Below are positions 9,162-64,000 of a stretch of DNA of 64,000 nt, one piece after another (within the stretch, counting starts at the first letter, position 1; every line of letters starts with the position of its first letter). The stretch is from contig NC_042997.1 in assembly GCF_006345805.1 (NCBI RefSeq), positions 22,196,001 to 22,260,000 on the forward strand, given 5' to 3'. A program made the translations under genes and the position numbers. This DNA is from Octopus sinensis. Lineage: Eukaryota. Below the pieces are notes generated by a model. It ran no database searches, was not told where the DNA came from, and saw nothing but the letters and a program-made list of their open reading frames with translations.

Positions 9162-9760
9162 AACCTAGCAAAAACCAATGTCTTAGTAAGTAGGAAGGCA
9201 GACAAATCCCAAATCCCTTCAGGTTGATGGCCCTACTCGATCTGTAGAAGAGGCATAAGTAGAAACCCTATAAGATGTACCTAGTGTAAGCTATTTACAC
9301 ATAAGAGGTGCAGCAATATCAGAAGAAGGTTAACAGGGAAAATAGCTTTTGTGTGTGGAAAATGCACAGGTACAATACTCACCGAAAATGTACAGAAAAC
9401 AGACTCCAACTACTTATGGGGTAAGCTAGAGGTAGTAGATAGCTTCCGTTATCTAGGTGACCAAGTTAATATTGGAGGTGGATGCCCCAAGAGTGTGGTT
9501 GTGAGAATAAGATTAGGTTGGACAAAGTTCTGAGAGCTCCTGCCTCTGCTGGCAGCAAAGGGCATCTCCCTCAAAGTGAAAGGTAGATTGTATGGTGCCT
9601 GTGTGCGAATAGCTATGTTACACAGCAGTGAAGCATGGACTGTGACAGCTGGGGACATGTGTAGGCTTGAAAGAAATGAAGCCAGTATGCTTGGCTGGAT
9701 GTGCAATGTCAGTGTGCATGTTCAACAGAGAGTGAGCATCTTGAAGGAAAATTTGGGCAT
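9162..9760 (+). mobile_element. RTE-clade LINE, decayed fragment of the post-RT region
   Basis: Translates as NLAKTNVLVS...VCGKC...LEVVDSFRYLGD...RIRLGWTKF*ELLPLL...KGRLYGACVRIAMLHSSEAW...LERNEASMLGWMC, typical RTE ORF C-terminal motifs, with stops. Confidence 0.9.
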
Positions 9761-9772
9761 TATATATATTAA

Positions 9773-9976
9773 TCCTTTAGCATTTAAACCAGCCATATAT
9801 TCTACTTGTTTAATGCTTGAACTGACCAGAACCAGCCTCTCACACCTACTCTGCAATGTCATTTAAAAGTAAGCAATCACATCATTGAAACCTCAAAGTT
9901 ATAATATAAGCCATCATTAATTCAAAACAATGAATAAATAAGCATTGCATTTGATGATGACCTGAATGCTAAAGGA
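9773..9976. mobile_element. piggyBac-like MITE
   Basis: TTAA|TCCTTTAGCATT ... AATGCTAAAGGA|CTAA; second copy in opposite orientation at 35203-35405. Confidence 0.6.
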
Positions 9977-21120: not shown

Positions 21121-21143
<23 letters not shown>

Positions 21144-21151
<8 letters not shown>

Positions 21152-21441
21152 TAATTAGGGTTCAGCAAAAAATTTGCTTCACCACATACCGAAAATTTAG
21201 AAATAGCAGCCAAACACCAAGCTATTTCCTCTACTGTAAGAGAATCTCCCAGATAACATATACTCAAATTACTGGGTGAATTTCGTTGTTTTTTCTCTTT
21301 ACCATCGTGGATTGTTTTTGAGTATATGTTATCTGGGAGATTCTCTTACAGTAGAGGAAATAGCTTGGTGTTTGACTGCTATTTCTAAATTTTCGGTATG
21401 TAGTGAAGCAAATTTTTTGCTGAACCCTAATTATAATTATA
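21144..21441. mobile_element. Fold-back MITE, 125-bp arms, 48-nt spacer
   Basis: 21144-21268 and 21317-21441 are reverse complements with only 2 mismatches (by eye). Confidence 0.9.
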
Positions 21442-21544
21442 CTCATAATTATAAAAAAATTGTTTTTTAAGTTTTTTAACATGCCAAAACTACTTGGTAA
21501 TAATCAATAATTATTAATTAATTAATTAATTTTTCCCTTTATTA

Positions 21545-22454: not shown

Positions 22455-23540
22455 GTATTTATCTGGGATTAACTTTAGTATGGCATCTAAGAAATATATA
22501 TTAATGATTCCTTTTATTGACCACAATGTTAATAAGAATTGTAACTTTTAGACCAAAATTTTTTAAGGTGTTAATAAGACCTTTCATATAGGTATCTAGT
22601 GTATACTCACTGGCATATTGTGAAATGTCCAACCCATCATGTATATATAGTCTAGTGTTTGATGTGGGAACATTCTTATTTAATGAGTCTAGTATATATA
22701 GGCCAACAGGATTACAAATCTCTGTGCTATCACACAGCCCCATACTGACGTTGAACAAACTTGTGAGATCTGCTTCTTTTGATCCAACCCTAATCCTTGT
22801 CAAAGATGAGTGCTTCAAGCATGCATAGTGATACTGATGTCATCATCATCTATACAATTATATTCTTTTGAAACCTAGAGTGCGAATGATAGAGATTTAG
22901 AAATAGAAGGTTAAAATTCAGTGATGTCAAATGTAATATGCTTAGAGTCATTTTTATAGTTAATATTATTGAACCAACTAATTACTGTATTAAAGTTATT
23001 CCTATGCTGAGGTGTATGTGTCGTTCTAATATTATTATCAAGTATTTTTAAAACATTTCTTCTGATTAATTTCATTTCTGCTTTTCCCAGATTAATTAAT
23101 CTACATTTTGGATTGAAGTTTAAATTCTTTTTATGATCCTTAGTCGAACATATACTTCATGTTTTGCCAAGCATTGTAACCTATTTTTAAATTCCCTTTC
23201 TTAGTTACATTTTAGCGTTTATATTATTTTAAATGTTTATGTTAGTCTTTTTGTAATTTCAAGTAATATTTTTATTATTTAGTTATTTGTAGGTGCTGTT
23301 TTCTTTTTCATAAAGGTCAATGGTTTTGTTAGAGAATATAAAGCTGTTTTTGAATTCTTAATATTCTTAATGTCAGATATAAGGTTATTTTGAAAGGTGT
23401 TGGTGTACTTATGAAAGCATGTGTTAGCTATCATATCTAAAAGGTTGAATTCAAAAGGTTTAAGGTCTTCAATACAAAGTGTGGTTTTTCATATTTTCAT
23501 TCCATTATTTGTGGTATTAGATTTGTATCCACAAACAAGT
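22455..23540 (-). mobile_element. Penelope-like element (Naiad-type motifs), decayed RT fragment
   Basis: Ordered motifs EDLKPFEFNLLDMI, DHKKNLNFNPKCRLINLGK, VISWFNNI, ITFDITEF*PSIS, FNVSMGLCDSTEICNPVGLYIL, LYIHDGL (YRDDG-like), FGLKVTI, FLDAIL match the PLE RT pattern [22 protein letters not shown]...YRDDGL; many stops and frameshifts. Confidence 0.85.
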
Positions 23541-26849: not shown

Positions 26850-27250
26850 CAAATCTTTCTTCGAATTCTTGTAGAATACAAGTCAGTGCTTATGTGCAAG
26901 TCAACAATACGTGCCTCAATTTGAAAATACTTCAGCTCCTAAGGTAATAGTTTGGGAATTGTGCCAAGTATATTAATTACCTCAGGAATAATTTTCATCC
27001 TTGTAATCCACAATATCTCTGTTTCTCTGGATGAGTTGTGATATTCATCAATTTTCTCAAATTCCTTGATATACACTTTTTCTATCATATGGAATTGCGA
27101 AGCCACTGATCTCACACTGTTCTTTCTCTTTTTCATGATCAAATCTGGTCTTCTTGTTTGAGTTGTATGATCAGTTTAGAAATTCTATAAAAACTCATAA
27201 CTTCCATTCACTGTGGAAGTCCTTGGTTCAAATCACTTTTGTGTCACTTC
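26850..27250 (-). mobile_element. R4/Dong-like LINE, C-terminal restriction-like endonuclease fragment
   Basis: TDHTTQTRRPDLIM...VAS...KEFEKIDEY...LW...IIPEVINILGTIPK matches the TDH..RRPD..KE.EKI.KY..IPVVIGALGTIPK pattern of RLE-type LINEs. Confidence 0.75.
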
Positions 27251-30954: not shown

Positions 30955-31637
30955 TATATACGATGGGCTTCTTTCAGTTTCTGTCTACCAAATCCACTCA
31001 TAAGGCTTTGGTTGGCTGAGGCTATAGTAGACGACACTTGCCCAATGTGCCACGCAGTGGGACTGAACCCAGAACCATGTGGTTTGTAAGCAAGCTACTT
31101 TATTTCATGAAAATTCGCCATTAAGGCATTACATAGAGGGGACATACAAATACAGACAAATATATAGGGTGTAGTAGCTTAAAACGTTTTAGTATTTACA
31201 ATATAATGTGCACAGTATTTACAATATAAAGTTTACAAATTTAATATCACATAGTAGGGCAAGGAACCCAGCCATCTGGGTAGAACCTTTACTTCTTGAT
31301 CCGGCCACACTTACCTGGTGCCAAATATACCCAGCTTGCAAGCTACAGACTTCCATATTTTCACAAACATATCTCGTGACAGACACCTCTTCTCCAGCCT
31401 GATCTTACTACCGAGGTGGTAACTGAAGAAGTTGACCAACCCCTGGCCGGATACAAAGGTACCTGTCACTATACCTTTCGTACATGTCTTCCATATGGTT
31501 TCTTTCAGTATGGCTACTATGCTGGAAAAACAAGCCTTCCTTTCCCTGCTGAGGAACTGAGGTGGCACAATCTCAATGATAGACTCCGCTGATAGCTGTA
31601 CTCTTCCACTCACTGACACAGCCACTCCTACGCCTAT
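30672..31637 (-). mobile_element. SINE family A split in its tRNA head by a LINE fragment
   Basis: Body 30672-31100 ends ...AAGCAAGCTACTT; remaining head ACACAGCCACTCCTACGCCTA at 31616-31637. Confidence 0.9.
31101..31615 (-). mobile_element. L1/Tx1-like LINE 3' fragment
   Basis: Open ORF end ...IVAILKETIWK...FFSYHLGSKIRLEKR...FVKIW...* resembling the Tx1 C-terminus, AT-rich 3'UTR, terminal AATAAA, no poly(A) tail. Confidence 0.65.
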
Positions 31638-33139
31638 TTGATAATCTTAGTTATTTAATGCTTCTTCTTCTTCTGCATGTGTCCCTTCAAAACACATATG
31701 ATGGTTACATAGCATCTCTCCACTTCTCACAGCTCTTTGCATTTTTATTGTTGTTTGCAAGGTCTTTTGAACTGCAAGTGTTAGCTTATATATATCTGCC
31801 TGTTTCTTACACACGGAGTTAATATGTCTAAGATATTTTAACTGGCTGCTACCAAGTAGCATCCAACAAAAAGTTATTTGTCTGGTAAGCAAACTCACAT
31901 CTACATTCAATAAAATTAAAACATTATAAAGAGCTAGGGACACACAAATCAAGGGTTTGACCAAGATTCAGTCTCCTAATCAGAATGTTTACTTCAATGT
32001 CCCAAACATCTAAAGAGAGGAGTTTAGATTCTCAATTCCTACAAGTATTTTGATAAAGGTCCTCAGAAGAAAATCATTCATCTATTTTTAGTAATTCTCA
32101 TTTGTCTATCTGATTCATTCTTCACTGCATCATGTCCTATAAGAATCTTTATTTCTGGAGCAAACAAAACAGCCCTCCAAGTGGTCCTGGGCCTGCTAGA
32201 AAATATTGTGTAATATATATACATATATGCATATATATATATATAGTTATAGATAGATAGATAGATAGATAGATATAGTACATACCATCATAGTTAAAAA
32301 TTACAATCATGATGGTTAACCATGAATTTAAAGAAGATAAAATAAAACAAAGACATCAAAATACAAAGCTGTAATCCTAATACATCCTAATATTTCAAAA
32401 AAGTAAGGGCACAATTTATCACGTGATTAAAAATCCACTGTCTAAAACCAAACATTAATGAAAAAACCAGAAGAGATATTCATGGCTGGCTTGACTTTAA
32501 TCATAAGTCTGGAGAAGTAAAACTGACCTGTGGTTAAACAATAGTGTTTATTACCAATAACCATGGCACTTCTCATCATTATAAACATCATCATCATTAA
32601 CTGCATGTACTTTCTTGCCCTCATTACTTTGCTGGCCTTCTCTCTATATGGCATTCCTTGAGAACTATATCTGTCCTCAAAACATTAGAATGTAACATAT
32701 TAAATGAGTCATTAACAGTTTTATTTCCATTAAGATTACTTTTTCTTTTTATGTTTCATCATTCTTATACAAGTATATTTGCATCTGATAAGTTTTGTAC
32801 TCTTAATAACTGAAATTATTTATCACTGAACTTATTGCTAATTATTTTTGATGTCTAATTTTTCATATATGACATATTCTTATTGCATATTGATTGCTAT
32901 ATCTTCTGAATCTATAATATATCTTAAATTAATTTGGGAAATAGCTCCCAATAACTGTAGCCTCTAATCTTTCAGTTTGCATTTAATGTAATTATAAATT
33001 TTTCCATTTAAATTATTGTAACCATACATAACAATGCTGGTTGTGCCAAAGATCATGCCCCAGCATCTTCATAAACATATAGCTGAAACCTACACAAAAG
33101 CCTTCTCTTGAAAGTACCATAGCCCATCCCCTCTCAAGT

Positions 33140-49560: not shown

Positions 49561-50262
49561 TATATTAGAGGAAAAAAGGACAATAAAATCCAAGGCAGGA
49601 CAAGTATCTCAAATTATTTAGAGTATTTAATTAGAGTAAGGCGAATTTGAAGTAATTAATTAATTAGTTAATTAATTATTGGATGTTTTACAGCTGTTTC
49701 TGGGATATCTCAAGTGATAGGTTAACATCTCCATACTCTGGGTATTTCGTCATTAGAGACAAGGTGTCTATGTATGAAAGTTCTAGACATGGAATTATAA
49801 AAGAATAAAATAGTAGATAGAAGAATAAAGAGTAAAAGAGTAGAGAGAAGAATACAGACAGGAGAATAAAGTTCACAGCTCATCTTCTTCCAGAGGGTAT
49901 GGCTATTGGTTTCATGGAAATACAGACCAGCCTCCATACCCTCTTGAAGAAGTTGAGCTGTGAACTTTATTCTTCTGTCTGTACTCTTCTATCTACTATT
50001 TTACTCTTTATTCTTCTATCTACTATTTTATTCTTTTATAATTCCCTGTCTAGAACTTTCATACACACTTTCCTTGTATCTGATGACAGAATACTTCAGG
50101 GTATGAAGATGCTAACCTAACACTTGGGATTTCCCAGAAACCACTGTAAGACCTCCAATAATTAATTAATTATTTCAAATTTACCTTACTCTAACAGAAC
50201 ATTCTAAATGACTTGAGATACTCATCCTGCCTTGGTTTTTGTTGTCCTTTTTCCTCCAATAT
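49561..50262. mobile_element. ~700-bp fold-back element with TA-flanked termini
   Basis: TATATTAGAGGAAAAAAGGACAA... and ...TTGTCCTTTTTCCTCCAATATA; arms stay complementary to a ~30-nt centre (49901-49933). Confidence 0.88.
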
Positions 50263-50299: not shown

Positions 50300-50930
50300 G
50301 GGTCATCCCATATATAATATGGTTTTTTTATACTTCTTTTATTTTTCAAAATTAAGATTAAAAAAAGTTCTTTTTCAATCTAAAATATGCCCTCTTTCTA
50401 CTTTGGGACTGAATAGAGATTTGTGATAAGAAATGGGTTCTCTATAAAAATGTCAAGTGTTGAAGACAGTGGGTAGGGAAAGGAGAAACACTGGCACCCC
50501 AAGCTAAAGGTCTTCACTCCAGGGTTTACAGGACATCTTTGTCAAGCTCTACAGAAATTCCAGGATGAGGTTTGTCTTCTAGGCTGTAGTTTCTGGCTTG
50601 AAATTTCTGGAACCACCATTGACACTGGCTTACACTTATTGTCTGATCCCCATATACTGCATTAATATTCCTTGCATTCTCCATTGTGTTGTTGCCTTTA
50701 TTGAACTCATAAAGCAAAATGTGCCAAATATGCTCCTTTGTCACTTCTGTTATAGCTTTGTAAAAATAACTGTTAAAATCGAACTGCACTCTTCAAAACT
50801 TGCACTAAGAATAAGTACAAGGTAAAATTACTACCTGCTTTTATAGCAAGTTGATGCAGGTAGTTTATCCTGTTCCCCTCTGACTTTTAGTTCATGCAAT
50901 TGAAAAAAACCACATTATGGGATGACCCAA
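50298..50930 (-). mobile_element. Internally deleted mariner transposon with transposase N-terminal remnant
   Basis: TIRs TTGGGTCATCCCATA...TGGTTTTTTT with TA TSDs; ORF 50526-50789 (HILLYEFNKG...ARNINAVYG...QWWFQKF...SLEDKPHPG) matches the mariner HTH region. Confidence 0.93.
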
Positions 50931-54450: not shown

Positions 54451-54644
54451 TTCTCACCCCTGACAAAACTAAATAACAGTAAATATTTAATTCAACAGTT
54501 ATATACCTTTTCTTTCCCAGCACTGCTTCCATTTCTTTCCAAGCCTCACATTTATCTTCTGGTGGAAAAAAGTTTATGATTATTATGATGTTTGTATGTG
54601 TGTTTATATATATATATATATTTATAAATAGACACACACGTATA

Positions 54645-54745
54645 CAGGGGTTGGACAAAATAATGGAAATACCTTAAAATTTCAAACAAATTTATTTTAA
54701 TATGGGGTAGGACCACCTTTGGCAGTAATTACAGCTTCAATTCTG
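54645..54745 (+). mobile_element. Tc1-like transposon terminal fragment
   Basis: TA|CAGGGGTTGGACAAAATAATGGAAATAC is a typical Tc1 end; no partner TIR in the window. Confidence 0.55.
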
Positions 54746-54749
54746 GCTA

Positions 54750-54995
54750 TCATGTTGATGGCATGCAATAAGCACCAGTCATGCGTGGGTCGTTGCCAGT
54801 ACTGCTTGACTGGCTCCCCATGCACATAAAAAGCACCATCCAAATGTGGCTGACTGGCTCCTGTGCTGGTGGCATGTAAAAAGCACCCACTACACTCTCG
54901 GAGTGGTTGGCATTAGGAAGGGCATCCAGCTGTAGAAGCATTGCCATATCAGATTGGAGCCTGTGCACCCTCCTGGTTTGCCAGTCCCCAGTCAT
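54750..54995 (+). mobile_element. Family C element, truncated
   Basis: Two ...AAAAAGCACC modules and GGTTGGCATTAGGAAGGGCATCCAGCTGTAG. Confidence 0.8.
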
Positions 54996-55431
54996 AGAGT
55001 AAGGGAACTATGGACACCCCATAGAGTAAGGGCAGTATGGGTTACCTTCAATATGGCCTCTCCAGTTTATGCCAACCAAATTTTAATAAAACTTTTGTTA
55101 TGGTGGAAGGTATTTGCCTAAAGTGTCATGCAGTGAGATTGAACCTCAAAACATGTAATTGCAAAACAAAATCTTTAACCACACTTATGTCCACAGCAGT
55201 ACAAGAGTCCCAAGTCCAGCTGGAACTGAAAATTGAAATGGGATTATGGGCTTAGCTCATGTAGTGGGTTTATATTCAAGAATATTTCTCAAGTAAAGCC
55301 AGTGAAAAAAAGACATTATTAAATATAATTGTGTAAGTATGGCTTCTTGGTGAATGAAGTAAAATGTTTTTGATTTAAATTGAATATTGTCTTTTTATTT
55401 ATTTAATAAAAGGAAAAAACAAAAACAGAAT

Positions 55432-55537
55432 TCTTAACCTACACATTTTTTCTTTCTCATTTTTCAGGTAAGTGTTCTGGACTGATTGATATCTTAAAGT
55501 TCCATTAACCATCGATCACCTTCTTTGTCTGGTAAGA
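55432..55537 (+). promoter_or_regulatory. Candidate recursive splice site with cryptic RS-exon
   Basis: TCTTAAC (55432-55438), polypyrimidine tract, CAG (55465-55467), GTAAGT (55468-55473); second donor CTG|GTAAGA at 55531/55532. Confidence 0.55.
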
Positions 55538-55645
55538 TGGAATTGATTTTAACTTTTTCAAGACTTATTTAAAATTTGAAAGTTTTAAATATCAGTTACT
55601 ATTCTAAAACGAACAATAAAAATATTATACTTAATATTTCAGTTG

Positions 55646-55750
55646 CTATAATTATTATTATTATTATTATTATTATTATCATTATTATTATCATTATTAT
55701 TACTATTATTATTATTATTATTATTGTTATTATTATTATGTCTTGTTGTT
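55646..55750. repeat. (ATT)n microsatellite
   Basis: Directly visible, with occasional ATC/ACT/GTT variants. Confidence 0.95.
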
Positions 55751-57408: not shown

Positions 57409-58380
57409 ATTCAGTAATGCTGCCATAGTCTCCTCTAGAGATATTTAGAAATATTAATATTTCTATTTCTAAATGTTGTTTTTAATATATCATAACTTCA
57501 GCATTAAGATTTTAACCTACTTCAGAATATATTGGTACAAAAAAACATGAGCCACATAGAGACATTGAGCAGGTTAAAAATAGGTAACAATATTTTGATT
57601 CAGTTGGTTAGAAAAAAATACTAATGGCATGAATAATAGTATGTACTTAACAAATGGTCAATTATTGGTACAACCACAAAAGAATCCCTCTAATCCTTTA
57701 GTTCCAACCATTTCAATGCTCCACATTTCTTTGAAATGTTTAATTAATTTTTGCATCCCCTAAAAATGTAATTATTTGAAGAAGGAAAAGTCAACCTTCT
57801 AATATCTGTTTATCTCTGTTTTATTAATGGAACCACATACAGTATTGTGGGTAAATGAATTTAACTCAAAACCTAAGCTTTTGACTTGGTGAATAAAATA
57901 CAAATGTAAATTGGGTCTGTAGAAAAATTCCTGTGAACTGAAATCAATCACAATTGTAAACAATGATTTCTTTTGTTCCTGCTTCTCATTCACGTGAATA
58001 TCAAGATGTGAAACTTCCTTCTTAAGATTCTTTGGTCTGCTTGGGAATCCAGACAAATTCCTAGATTTTGTTTTGGTTGGCACAAGAGAACTAAATCCAG
58101 ATTCATATGAATATTTCATTGTATATGGAATAAGAAAACAGCTCTTGGTCATAATCTCATGAGAGAGAAATCAACATACGTAAAATAATGAAGTTCATGG
58201 CATGTGATATGTTTAACAGAATAAAGTTCCTTTTAAGAGTTTGTTAATAATTTTATTCTTAAAAGTGATTTAAATATGTGTATTCTTTCCCTTCTCTGTC
58301 ATACCTACTGAAATGCTATTTTGGCACCCACAAGGGATATGAGCATTCACAATTTGAAACCACTGCACAGCTCAATGAAA

Positions 58381-58416
<36 letters not shown>

Positions 58417-60080
58417 CATTCTTTCCACTCTGTAGTAGTTTTAATTTATTGTGAAACTTTAAGCATTTACTAAAATGATTGGTGTATATATATTTCTGGG
58501 TGTTTTTTTTTCTAATAATATAAATGTTAATTATAAAGTAGGAATTGTACTTATGTTTAAATTGAGGTAATTGACCAAGTGGATTAATAAAATATAATCT
58601 AAAAACATTCAGCATCTAATTACTGATTATGAAATTACTATTAAATTTTATTCCTTTTTTTTATTATTTATTTATGAATTTTATGTTTTTAAACTGATAT
58701 CTATTTTCATTCTTTTCTTTTTGTCAGATATATATGTCCATATTTAAACATAAAAGAACAAAACTGAAACCTGTTTTATTTTAAAAACAGACACATTGCT
58801 TAGCTTCCTTTTGTATTCTATATTTTAACCTATAAATTTGCATATATCTAACATTTATATTATGAAGGAATTTCAATTCAAACGCCTATGACACTTTAGC
58901 TTCAGATTATATTGTACTTTCAAGCACTTTGTCCTATATTTTGATTGTAGAAACTAGACCACTTAATAAATTCTATTTTTATAGGAAATGAATCATAAAT
59001 ATAACATAACTACTTGTAACGTAAGTTACATGGAGGCCAAATCCAGATGTTTCATTAAGAAATTTCATTCATATTTATATCTTAGTTAAGATAATATTAT
59101 TGTTATTTTGCATCTATGTTATATGCTTACATGTTATCAAACGTTTACAAGTTGGCTACAAGTTTGATGTCTAGGAACTAGCTATTCAGTTGACTAAAGT
59201 TTCTAGACATAATGGCTCACATGTGACTAAAGCTTTAGTTGGGACAAGCCCAGTATGACACAACAGTGGGGTTGTCATTTAATGACAATCAGTTTCAACT
59301 CATTGACACAGATTCCACGAAGGCTAAGCTGAAATGCTTTGCTATTACTCAGAAATGGAAAAACTTCTGAAGACTAGTGAGGATAAGGAATAATAGTCTT
59401 TTCTTTATTTACTTGTGCAAACCAAATCAATGATGGTGGTGCAAAAATTTTATGTAATGGTAAAAACACTGGAAATTTTAAAAATTTATAATGTTGTGAA
59501 TTAATTTCCAAAAGAAATTAATAATTACAAGTAAGGTCAGATTCTTATATATATATCGAAATCTGTCTGCACCAATTCAAATATATTCTCAGAGATGACT
59601 TGAGTCAGCTTAAAAAATTGGAGCGAAAGTACAAAGTGCTTTTGTGGATATGAACTGTCCTGGATTTGTTAAAATTTCTATTTAATGTGGAAAACTGAAT
59701 CCCTTTCAGGCTTACAAAAAGGTTACAAAAAGAAGAAATTTAAGCTGTTGAAAATAAATATTAAGCAAGTATTTATGAAATTAGTCTAAATATCCTAATA
59801 ATACTGTGAAATTTAAAGTTAGTGTTAAGATAAAAGTTGGTACTTGCAGCAAGTAACTATTTTGAATAAACCAATATTGAAATGTAACTATCATATCATT
59901 TTGATGTCCACTTTCTTATGCTTGCATGAATCAGCCATAATTCATTGAGGCACATTTACTACTGCTAGCTGCCTTTCCAATTGCCAAACCCCACCTATTT
60001 CCAAGCCAGGCAATATTTCCCCTTGGTCAGACATGTTTTCACAGAAGACTAGAAATAAACGATATATATATATGTATATG

Positions 60081-60114
<34 letters not shown>

Positions 60115-60115
60115 T

Positions 60116-62221
60116 CTCTGGCTTTCATTCAGTCATTTATCTAATTAATTATTTTTCCCCCTCAAATATAGTATTCAAACTAGTTGCTTCGATTCTCTCT
60201 CTCTCTCTCTCTCGTGTTTCCGTCCCCTTCCCTAATTCCCTTATAAAAGCCAGCGTGCGATCGTATCTGATCCCTATTCACTCGCTACACCTTCAGAGAA
60301 AACACAGACTTCCAAAAATGGCCAGCTAAGTCAATTTCATCCTGCTCTTTTCATATTTTTAAGCGTTTTGTTTGGATAGCTTGATCTGTTCTCCCTTCGT
60401 TCCCCTATTCTCTAAACATGGCGACTTCACGCATTGCATTTTTAAAGTTTATCCATTCTCCTCCGAAATATGCCCCCTCGTCTCTTACCGTATTTTTTTC
60501 ATTATTTATCTATTCTCATTCTCTACCGTATTTTTTTCATTATTTATCTATTTCCATTCTCTACCGTATTTTTTTATTATTTATCTATTTTCATTCTCTC
60601 TCTGGCTTTCATTCAGTCATTTATCTAATTAATTATTTTTCCCCCTCAAATATAGTATTCAAACTAGTTGCTTCGATTCTCTCTCTCTCTCTCTCTCTCG
60701 TGTTTCCGTCCCCTTCCCTAATTCCCTTATAAAAGCCAGCGTGCGATCGTATCTGATCCATATTCACTCGCTACACCTTCAGAGAAAACACAGACTTCCA
60801 AAAATGGCCAGCTAAGTCAATTTCATCCTGCTCTTTTCATATTTTTAAGCGTTTTGTTTGGATAGCTTGATCTGTTCTCCCTTCGTTCCCCTATTCTCTA
60901 AACATGGCGACTTCACGCATTGCATTTTTAAGTTTATTTTCCTTCAGGGCCATCTTCGATGTTTATCCATTCTCCTCCGAATATGCCCCCTCGTCTCTTA
61001 CCGTATTTTTTTCATTATTTATCTATTCTCATTCTCTACCGTATTTTTTTCATTATTTATCTATTTCCATTCTCTACCGTATTTTTTTATTATTTATCTA
61101 TTTTCATTCTCTCTCTGGCTTTCATTCAGTCATTTATCTAATTAATTATTTTTCCCCCTCAAATATAGTATTCAAACTAGTTGCTTCGATTCTCTCTCTC
61201 TCTCTCTCTCTCTCGTGTTTCCGTCCCCTTCCCTAATTCCCTTATAAAAGCCAGCGTGCGATCGTATCTGATCCCTATTCACTCGCTACACCTTCAGAGA
61301 AAACACAGACTTCCAAAAATGGCCAGCTAAGTCAATTTCATCCTGCTCTTTTCATATTTTTAAGCGTTTTGTTTGGATAGCTTGATCTGTTCTCCCTTCG
61401 TTCCCCTATTCTCTAAACATGGCGACTTCACGCATTGCATTTTTAAAGTTTATTTTCCTTCAGGGCCATCTTCGATGTTTATCCATTCTCCTCCGAAATA
61501 TGCCCCCTCGTCTCTTACCGTATTTTTTTCATTATTTATCTATTCTCATTCTCTACCGTATTTTTTTCATTATTTATCTATTTCCATTCTCTACCGTATT
61601 TTTTTATTATTTATCTATTTTCATTCTCTCTCTGGCTTTCATTCAGTCATTTATCTAATTAATTATTTTTCCCCCTCAAATATAGTATTCAAACTAGTTG
61701 CTTCGATTCTCTCTCTCTCTCTCTCTCGTGTTTCCGTCCCCTTCCCTAATTCCCTTATAAAAGCCAGCGTGCGATCGTATCTGATCCATATTCACTCGCT
61801 ACACCTTCAGAGAAAACACAGACTTCCAAAAATGGCCAGCTAAGTCAATTTCATCCTGCTCTTTTCATATTTTTAAGCGTTTTGTTTGGATAGCTTGATC
61901 TGTTCTCCCTTCGTTCCCCTATTCTCTAAACATGGCGACTTCACGCATTGCATTTTTAAAGTTTATTTTCCTTCAGGGCCATCTTCGATGTTTATCCATT
62001 CTCCTCCGAAATATGCCCCCTCGTCTCTTACCGTATTTTTTTCATTATTTATCTATTCTCATTCTCTACCGTATTTTTTTCATTATTTATCTATTTCCAT
62101 TCTCTGCCGTATTTTTTTATTATTTATCTATTTTCATTCTCTCTCTGGCTTTCATTCAGTCATTTATCTAATTAATTATTTTTCCCCCTCAAATATAGTA
62201 TTCAAACTAGTTGCTTCGATT
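60116..62221. repeat. Tandem array of a ~484-517-bp unit (4 full copies plus a partial)
   Basis: Unit starts (CTCTGGCTTTCATTCAG) at 60116, 60600, 61113, 61630, 62143; each unit has (CT)n and three ~37-bp ACCGTATTTTTT..ATTATTTATCTATT sub-repeats. Confidence 0.97.
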
Positions 62222-64000
62222 TTGTCGCCCGCCCTCCCACCCCCAATACCGGAAGTTTCTACCCTAATACCGGAAACTACCCCCTCCCCCACTAGCACCT
62301 ATGTAGGGTTTATCTGAACATATAGCGCAAAAATTGTGAAAAGTATGCAGGTTGTAGTCTAGAGTTTCCATATGAAATCTGCCAAATGCAAGCTTTCTTT
62401 TCAGGTACATGACACTGCTGTCCCTCGTCCCAGGGTCTCTGATGCCCACACCTCCCAAACCCTCAGAGTTGGCACGCTCAACGTTGGCACATTGAAAGGT
62501 AGGTCTGGAGAGATTGTAGAGCTGCTTGAACGGAGACGTGTGGATGTATGCTGTATCCAGGAAGTAAGGTGGAGAGGAGGTTCTGCTAGGCTCCTCACGG
62601 GCAAGGAACACAGGTACAAGATTTTCTGGGCAGGGAACATTGACGGTGTCGGGGGCGTGGGTATACTTCTCGCGGAGAAATGGATAGGTAAGGTAATCGA
62701 GGTAGTCAGAATAAGTGACAGAGTAATTAAAATTAGATTAGTTCTTCACCATAGGACAGCTACCATCATCTCGGCATATGCCCCTCAACCAGGGCTACCG
62801 GAAGGACAAAAAGACCAATTCTATGACACCCTATTGCGGACTACCTCATTGACAAATGACAGTGACCTTCTCTTCGTGGCAGGTGATTTCAATGGACATG
62901 TTGGACGACATGTCAGGGGCTTCCATGGCATCCATGGAGGCCACGGTTTTGGCTCTCGAAATGAGGAGGGAACCAGGCTGCTGGAGTTCTGCGATGCAAA
63001 TGACCTTATGGTCTGCAATACCCACTTCAGGAAACCACCTCTCACCTAGTCACCTACCGTTCTGGCAGACACACCAGCCAGATTGACTACATCCTTGCCA
63101 GAAAAAGGGAAAGAGGGCTGATTATAAATGCCAAAACCTTCCCAGGCGAAGAATGTACTCCCCAACATAGATTAGTAGTTAGCGACTTCAGGATCAGAGC
63201 TAAATGGTCGCCCAGAAGAAGACCAGCTTGGAGGAGAAGGGTCTGGAAGCTTAAAGATCCTGCAAATGCACAGAGATTTAGAGACATACTACTCGAAGCC
63301 TCTGACGAAATAGAAGGGGATATAGCTTCACTTAATGTGGAAGACAACTGGAGATTCCTACGGGACAATCTGCTGACAGCCACTGACCAGATCTGTGGAT
63401 GGAGCAAAGTACCATCTCGACCCAGAGTAACATGGTGGTGGAACACGGTGGTTGACGGGGCTATTAGACAAAAGAGACAGGCTTGGAAGGACTGGAAGAA
63501 CGGTGGTAGCAGGGAATTGTATCAGACAGCCAAAAAAGGGAAGCTAGGAGACAGGTTTATATAGCCAGAGGGGAAGCGGATAAGAAAAAATTTGCCAATG
63601 TTCTGAGCCGTGAGGATGAAAGACTTGAGGTATTTCGTGTTGCAAGACAGTGTGTGAGAGAGAATCGTGATGTGGTAGGAGAGAAGTGTGTTCGCATGGA
63701 TGATGGTTCACTTGCGCTAAATGAGGATGCAAAGAGAGAGGTTTGGAGATGCCACTATGAAAGTTTGCTGAATAAAGAAAATGAATGGGATAAAGAGAGT
63801 CTGCCAAATGTTGACCCAACAGAGGGACCAGCTATCCGAGTTGATAGTTCCGTAGTAGCTAAGGCAGTTAGAAGCATGAAGACAGGGAAAGCCCCAGGCC
63901 CATCAGGAATTACTGCAGAGATGCTCAAAATATCTGGCAGTGTCGGCTATAACCTAGTCACCCGTATAGTCAACCAGGTGATACACGAAGGAGTCATACC
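62222..64000 (+). mobile_element. Young RTE-clade LINE, 5' region: APE endonuclease and start of RT; two frameshifts; truncated by the window edge
   Basis: LRVGTLNVGTL, DVCCIQEVRW, GVGILL, IISAYAPQ, VAGDFNGHVG, NTHFRK / QIDYIL, QHRLVVSD, TWWWN, KAPGPSGITAEMLK; frameshifts near 63045 and 63540. Confidence 0.97.

Follow-up and report, generated by a model that had tools for sequence, protein, structure and literature searches.

The DNA analysed here, a 64-kb stretch referred to below as the window, carries at 55432–55537 of its + strand an element that matches the sequence-level hallmarks of fly and vertebrate ratchet points. We suggest that this element could function as a ratchet point, or recursive splice site, whose cryptic RS-exon measures 64 nt, and could lie within a very long intron of an Octopus gene on the + strand, a reading to which we give somewhat less than even credence. 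The original prediction of a recursive-site layout held for its sequence-level part, namely an abutting acceptor and donor, T at −5 and −6, a short out-of-frame RS-exon, single-copy sequence and rarity; the remainder of the recursive reading, that is, transcription, the strand, membership in an intron, use of the site and the outcome of its use, is what we infer.

Structure of the candidate site and its likeness to known ratchet points

The element opens with a branch-point-like TCTTAAC (55432–55438, +), in which A55437 fits yUnAy (TTAAC) and stands 30 nt ahead of the acceptor AG. It is followed by the polypyrimidine tract TTTTTTCTTTCTCATTTTT (55446–55464, +), in which 18 of the 19 positions are pyrimidines, and the 3′ splice site scores 10.67 bits. 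T occupies −5 and −6 and, moreover, the whole of −4 to −8. The zone 55429–55465 is free of AG, the closest AG further upstream being at 55427–28. The putative ratchet-point core CAG|GTAAGT is found at 55465–55473 (+), with the acceptor AG at 55466–67 and the donor GT at 55468–69. All positions of this 9-mer can pair with the 5′ end of U1 snRNA. The putative cryptic RS-exon (55468–55531, +) is 64 nt long, would shift the reading frame and contains stops in all three frames; it is closed by the donor CTG|GTAAGA (55529–55537, +; GT at 55532–33) with a score of 5.1 bits. In the genomic context, the ratchet donor scores 8.7 bits versus 5.1 bits for the RS-exon donor, and GTAAGT and GTAAGA differ only at +6; the 8.7-bit value uses the genomic −3 to −1 positions, while the real ones would come from the upstream exon.

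The positions given in the original prediction for TCTTAAC and A55437, the AG-free tract, the CAG ending at 55467, GTAAGT at 55468–55473 and the second donor were all correct. We also confirmed that the 64-nt interval between the two donors has stops in all three frames and a length that is not a multiple of 3. No structured RNA or known RNA family accounts for the site: the RNA structure of the candidate region was unremarkable (fold z = −0.55), and neither Rfam families, even as weak matches, nor tRNAs were detected there.

The candidate sits in a single-copy island of ~400 bp (55250–55640), flanked by a SINE remnant upstream and by an (ATT)n microsatellite (55647–55739) downstream. When the island was compared with the remaining window and with other Octopus loci totalling 95.6 kb, nothing similar was seen; the site as a piece of a repeat was thus ruled out over ~160 kb of Octopus sequence. 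Four ORFs near the site were looked up as exact proteins, with the aim of retrieving overlapping contigs from this or a related species, and none gave a match; the ORF calling on Logan contigs is selective, so a non-coding ORF would go unindexed. Exact 24-mers were absent from the metagenome contigs scanned.

Recursive splicing is documented in Drosophila and in vertebrates, and in the latter the sites are located in long introns of neuronal genes. In flies, a ratchet point consists of an acceptor and a donor in tandem within a long intron, with a very well conserved core and a cryptic RS-exon of ~50 nt that a downstream donor delimits; the cryptic exon is skipped when the ratchet donor outcompetes that of the RS-exon, and in fly reporters mutation of the ratchet donor switches it to full inclusion (PMC8605326). 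T is carried at −5 and −6 by 196 of 197 fly ratchet points (Duff et al. preprint, 10.1101/006163), and 63–70% of fly introns longer than 40 kb hold recursive sites (Pai et al. 2018, PMC6110457). The octopus candidate resembles the Drosophila sites in Ubx, kuz and Bx (10.1101/006163, PMC8605326, PMC6110457) in the juxtaposed AG|GT with an optimal GTAAGT donor, the prominent pyrimidine tract, T at −5 and −6 and the position within a long exon-free stretch. The RS-exon, too, is short (~50 nt in flies against 64 nt in the octopus candidate) and not in frame, with a downstream donor weaker than that of the ratchet point, here by its score in the genomic context. The host, on the other hand, is a cephalopod mollusc, and the fly sites were defined by intron, strand, conservation, junction reads, sawtooth patterns and lariats, whereas the candidate was recognised by its sequence. 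Conservation is the strongest computational discriminator of ratchet points in flies.

The vertebrate sites (Sibley et al. 2015 via PMC8605326) share with the candidate an RS-exon defined by a downstream 5′ splice site, two competing donors and disruption of the frame when the RS-exon is included. The ratchet points noted definitively in mammals as intronic and fully suppressed number only nine (Joseph & Lai 2021, PMC8605326), so the presence of a good motif is no guarantee that it is used; in contrast to the candidate, these nine came from RNA data and conservation and not from the motif alone. The annotated RS-exons repressed by the EJC (Blazquez et al. 2018, PMC6224609) similarly open with a 5′ splice-site motif and recreate a donor upon ligation, but they are expressed, mostly constitutive and coding, whereas the 64 nt of the candidate cannot code. 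Finally, poison, decoy and cryptic exons of long introns (PMC7373989, PMC7997972) are also short non-coding pseudo-exons with good splice sites deep in non-coding DNA; unlike the candidate, they need no donor abutting the acceptor, and this abutting donor is the statistically remarkable feature here.

Frequency of the motif by chance

Loose versions of the motif were not significant. The CAGGTAAGT pattern occurred 2 times in the window versus 0.46 expected, and Y7NCAGGTRAGT with 1 mismatch was attained in 29% of shuffles. Therefore, every AGGT on both strands was scored on the full composite of an acceptor matrix (−20 to −3) and a donor matrix (−3 to +6), these matrices being a rough and generic metazoan consensus of our own making, with octopus outside the training. 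The candidate reached 19.4 bits (10.7 + 8.7) and ranked at the top of the 370 AGGT sites on both strands of the window, the runner-up having 10.5 bits; the highest AGGT in 95.6 kb of other Octopus loci had 9.0 bits. In simulated windows generated by Markov chains of order 1, 3 and 5, all trained on the 64-kb window itself, 19.4 bits was attained in 0/300, 0/300 and 1/300 cases, respectively.

The empirical counts were considered as well. An acceptor context as good as that of the candidate was present at 5 of 7627 AG sites in the window and at 4 of 11,336 in the other Octopus loci, and GTAAGT follows straight after AG in ~4 cases per 10,000 in the window and in ~2–4 per 10,000 over the two sets. 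As an empirical product, the chance rate of the core is ~0.002 per 64 kb from the window and ~0.0005 from the 95.6 kb of other Octopus DNA, these rarity figures applying to a window that was chosen after reading. A donor of at least 5.1 bits lying 20–150 nt downstream has a chance probability of ~0.05–0.07, with 23 such donors on the + strand of the window, and the chance rate falls ~20-fold once this donor is demanded. Next to nothing is gained from the branch motif or from the stops, because random sequence commonly has both: a yTnAy motif lies 18–40 nt upstream of 44% of AG sites (a strong pentamer, of 9%), and stops in all frames are found in 36% of random 64-mers, which makes the latter feature uninformative. 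Consequently, the designation of the 64 nt as a "poison" exon was borne out as to the presence of the stops, but the label leans on a property that 36% of random 64-mers share.

The earlier statement that no other site of equal strength is present agreed with our scan, in which the one other CAGGTAAGT of the window lacked a pyrimidine tract and had a 3′ splice-site score of −2.3. For a window of 64 kb, the candidate core is truly exceptional statistically. The octopus genome is about 2.7 Gb in size, and by our estimate of the rate it would hold tens of chance cores this strong.

Proposed splicing pathway and alternative explanations

Based on the known systems, we suggest the following pathway for the candidate. 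The acceptor ending at 55467 and the donor at 55532 would first be recognised together across the short exon (exon definition). The upstream exon would then be joined to 55468, and the first part of the intron would leave as a lariat branched near A55437. This ligation would regenerate a 5′ splice site composed of the end of the upstream exon and GTAAGT, which may beat the weaker CTG|GTAAGA donor. After that, the 64 nt would be excised together with the remaining intron, and the mRNA would keep no trace of the event. If the downstream donor were used instead, a 64-nt frameshifting insert would truncate the reading frame, provided that the intron interrupts coding sequence.

The same letters may also represent a functionless chance motif, in which a T-rich tract, CAG and GTAAGT came together by accident in AT-rich DNA, either untranscribed or transcribed from the opposite strand, with GTAAGA being coincidental; we consider this explanation doubtful but a real possibility. 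It would be consistent with the lack of significance of the loose motif versions, with the tens of such cores expected by accident in a genome of a few gigabases and with a branch motif and stops at the level of random sequence. The other CAGGTAAGT of the window is demonstrably accidental, lying inside a LINE remnant, and no host gene or sign of the transcribed strand was seen in the window (see below). Against a chance origin stand the per-window probability of ~0.0005–0.002, ~20-fold less with the suitably spaced second donor, and the fact that the sequence hallmarks of true ratchet points all occur together. The probability of the candidate hangs on the number of real sites: at a fly-like frequency per long intron, they would outnumber accidental sites of this quality and the candidate would probably be real, and at the low frequency of the definitive mammalian set most such sites would be accidental.

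It is also conceivable, though unlikely, that the element is spliced in an ordinary, non-recursive manner, either as a non-coding, 5′UTR, lncRNA or regulated poison cassette exon (55468–55531) or as a cryptic terminal exon using the AATAAA located ~145 nt downstream, at about 55613. A strong acceptor and a reasonable donor 64 nt apart would suit such an exon, and exons opening with a 5′ splice-site-like motif are frequent in mammals, more than 6,400 expressed RS-exons having been suggested (PMC8605326). A start at exactly GTAAGT is nevertheless an event of ~2–4 in 10,000, and the coding capacity of the 64 nt is nil. As for a terminal exon, AATAAA is indeed present downstream of the acceptor, but it is uninformative, because this hexamer occurs about once per 800 nt on the + strand. 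Finally, the 55467|55468 junction might be the donor that ends a longer exon, with an acceptor or a transcription start further upstream and a pyrimidine tract that is exonic by coincidence. CAG|GTAAGT is a perfect donor, and the reading frames upstream of 55467 are open for 10, 19 and 29 codons, leaving room for a short exon. We hold this to be very improbable: the sequence upstream is A/T-rich and low in information and adjoins the SINE remnant, no notable ORF, Pfam match or CpG-rich promoter-like sequence was found there, and the top-ranked acceptor context would be left unexplained.

With regard to the recursive reading, the candidate is at present a credible, unproven single prediction based on the motif, and as it stands it is a good target for primer design rather than a discovery. 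Full-text literature searching yielded no account of recursive splicing from cephalopods or any other mollusc, consistent with the original view that such sites are uncharacterised in cephalopods. If the reading were true, recursion through RS-exons would occur in lophotrochozoans besides insects and vertebrates and would therefore probably be ancestral to bilaterians; cephalopods, whose genes have very large introns, would gain a stepwise processing route. Confirmation of the site would thus add a third major lineage of animals, one whose introns are very long, to those in which the mechanism is documented, and would provide a concrete locus at which to ask whether cephalopod introns are removed stepwise and whether a frameshifting cryptic exon is regulatory.

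Gene content and strand of the window

Judging from its sequence, the window is Octopus DNA. Its SINE and LINE families match a chromosome locus of O. bimaculoides at 70–90% identity, and the best relatives of the endonuclease ORF (62372–63046, Pfam Exo_endo_phos) are annotated as "craniofacial development protein 2-like" in O. bimaculoides (80%) and O. sinensis (67%). The G+C content is 34%, and 19% of the window consists of in-window repeats.

The search for a host gene began with Pfam on 10 chosen ORFs and was then widened to 296 ORFs (stop to stop, 45 aa or longer). The latter set returned only Exo_endo_phos, which belongs to a LINE (62298–64000, +), and HTH_48, which belongs to a mariner fragment (50529–50792, −; Pfam E = 1e-18). 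A scan for ORFs flanked by splice sites yielded no convincing exon, the candidates being LINE-internal or otherwise unconvincing, and neither Rfam families nor tRNAs (0 of each) were found across the window. Hence, all ORFs with homology in the window derive from transposons, and Pfam together with the splice-flanked ORF scan detected no recognisable host-gene exon in the 64 kb on either strand. The window is therefore either part of one giant intron or intergenic DNA. The region 5600–60000, ~54 kb in length, has no recognisable host exon and is AT-rich and CpG-depleted, with SINE, LINE and DNA-transposon remnants; such an exon-free window fits a giant intron, and intergenic DNA looks equally so. 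Annotation assigns the greater part of the O. bimaculoides genome to intergenic sequence (PMC9476566).

The second CAGGTAAGT of the window (31309–31317, minus strand) is the terminus of a LINE ORF2 C-terminal remnant (31309–31967, −), which consists of two ORFs in one frame with a single stop between them and ends exactly with CAG|GTAAGT. The minus-strand ORF 31314–31967 was considered as an exon of a gene on that strand and rejected: it is assigned to the tail of a LINE ORF2 because of the in-frame stop, the 73 mostly fragmentary relatives and the zf-RVT domain in the longer of these. The remnant illustrates that a perfect donor 9-mer can originate within a transposon.

No usable strand signal was obtained from T/A and G/C skew, AATAAA asymmetry, CpG depletion or transposon orientation. 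On the + strand, T exceeds A (+3.9%) and C exceeds G (−4.4%), and both skews are within the range over which four other Octopus loci vary. The + strand has fewer AATAAA hexamers than the minus strand (79 vs 122), and composition alone predicts most of this gap. In O. bimaculoides, CpGs that are methylated cluster within the bodies of constitutively expressed genes (PMC9476566), and CpG depletion was therefore examined as a gene-body mark. In unique sequence, the CpG observed/expected ratio was 0.07–0.28 across about 5.6–60 kb, and the median was 0.26 in the window vs 0.25 in 23 bins of four other Octopus loci. CpG depletion was rejected as a gene-body discriminator, because depletion also prevails in the four comparison loci.

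A sharp step in the CpG ratio was noted near the left end of the window, from 0.74–0.79 in 1–6 kb to 0.07–0.28 in 6–60 kb. The switch occurs at about 5.2–5.6 kb, at a SINE; the part to the left is not a repeat, and a similar step is present in an O. bimaculoides locus (L001). This step may mark the edge of a germline-methylated domain, for example, a promoter or gene-body boundary, and no exon was found at ~5.2–5.6 kb.

Several other elements were recorded. A Tc1-like terminal repeat with a transposase C-terminus was recognised by eye at 54640–54800 (−), and the ORF 57802–58170 (−) presumably resembles the C-terminus of a hAT-type transposase. Two near-perfect, hairpin-like inverted repeats, at 49742–50094 (arms of 161 nt, 90% identity, gap of 31 nt) and 21125–21460 (arms of 144 nt, 93% identity, gap of 48 nt), look like MITE-like or foldback elements. 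The decayed ORFs 9285–9863 (+), 22504–23488 (−) and 26942–27175 (−) are retroelement-like by eye, with no Pfam match at E ≤ 0.01. In addition, a tandem array at 60080–62240 contains ~4.2 copies of a ~513-bp unit, 89–100% identical, with three 38-bp sub-repeats per unit. The array lies directly against the 5′ end of the LINE (endonuclease ORF from 62372 on) and could represent monomers of the LINE 5′UTR or an unrelated satellite; a related LINE copy in the same O. bimaculoides locus L001 is alignable only from 62298 on.
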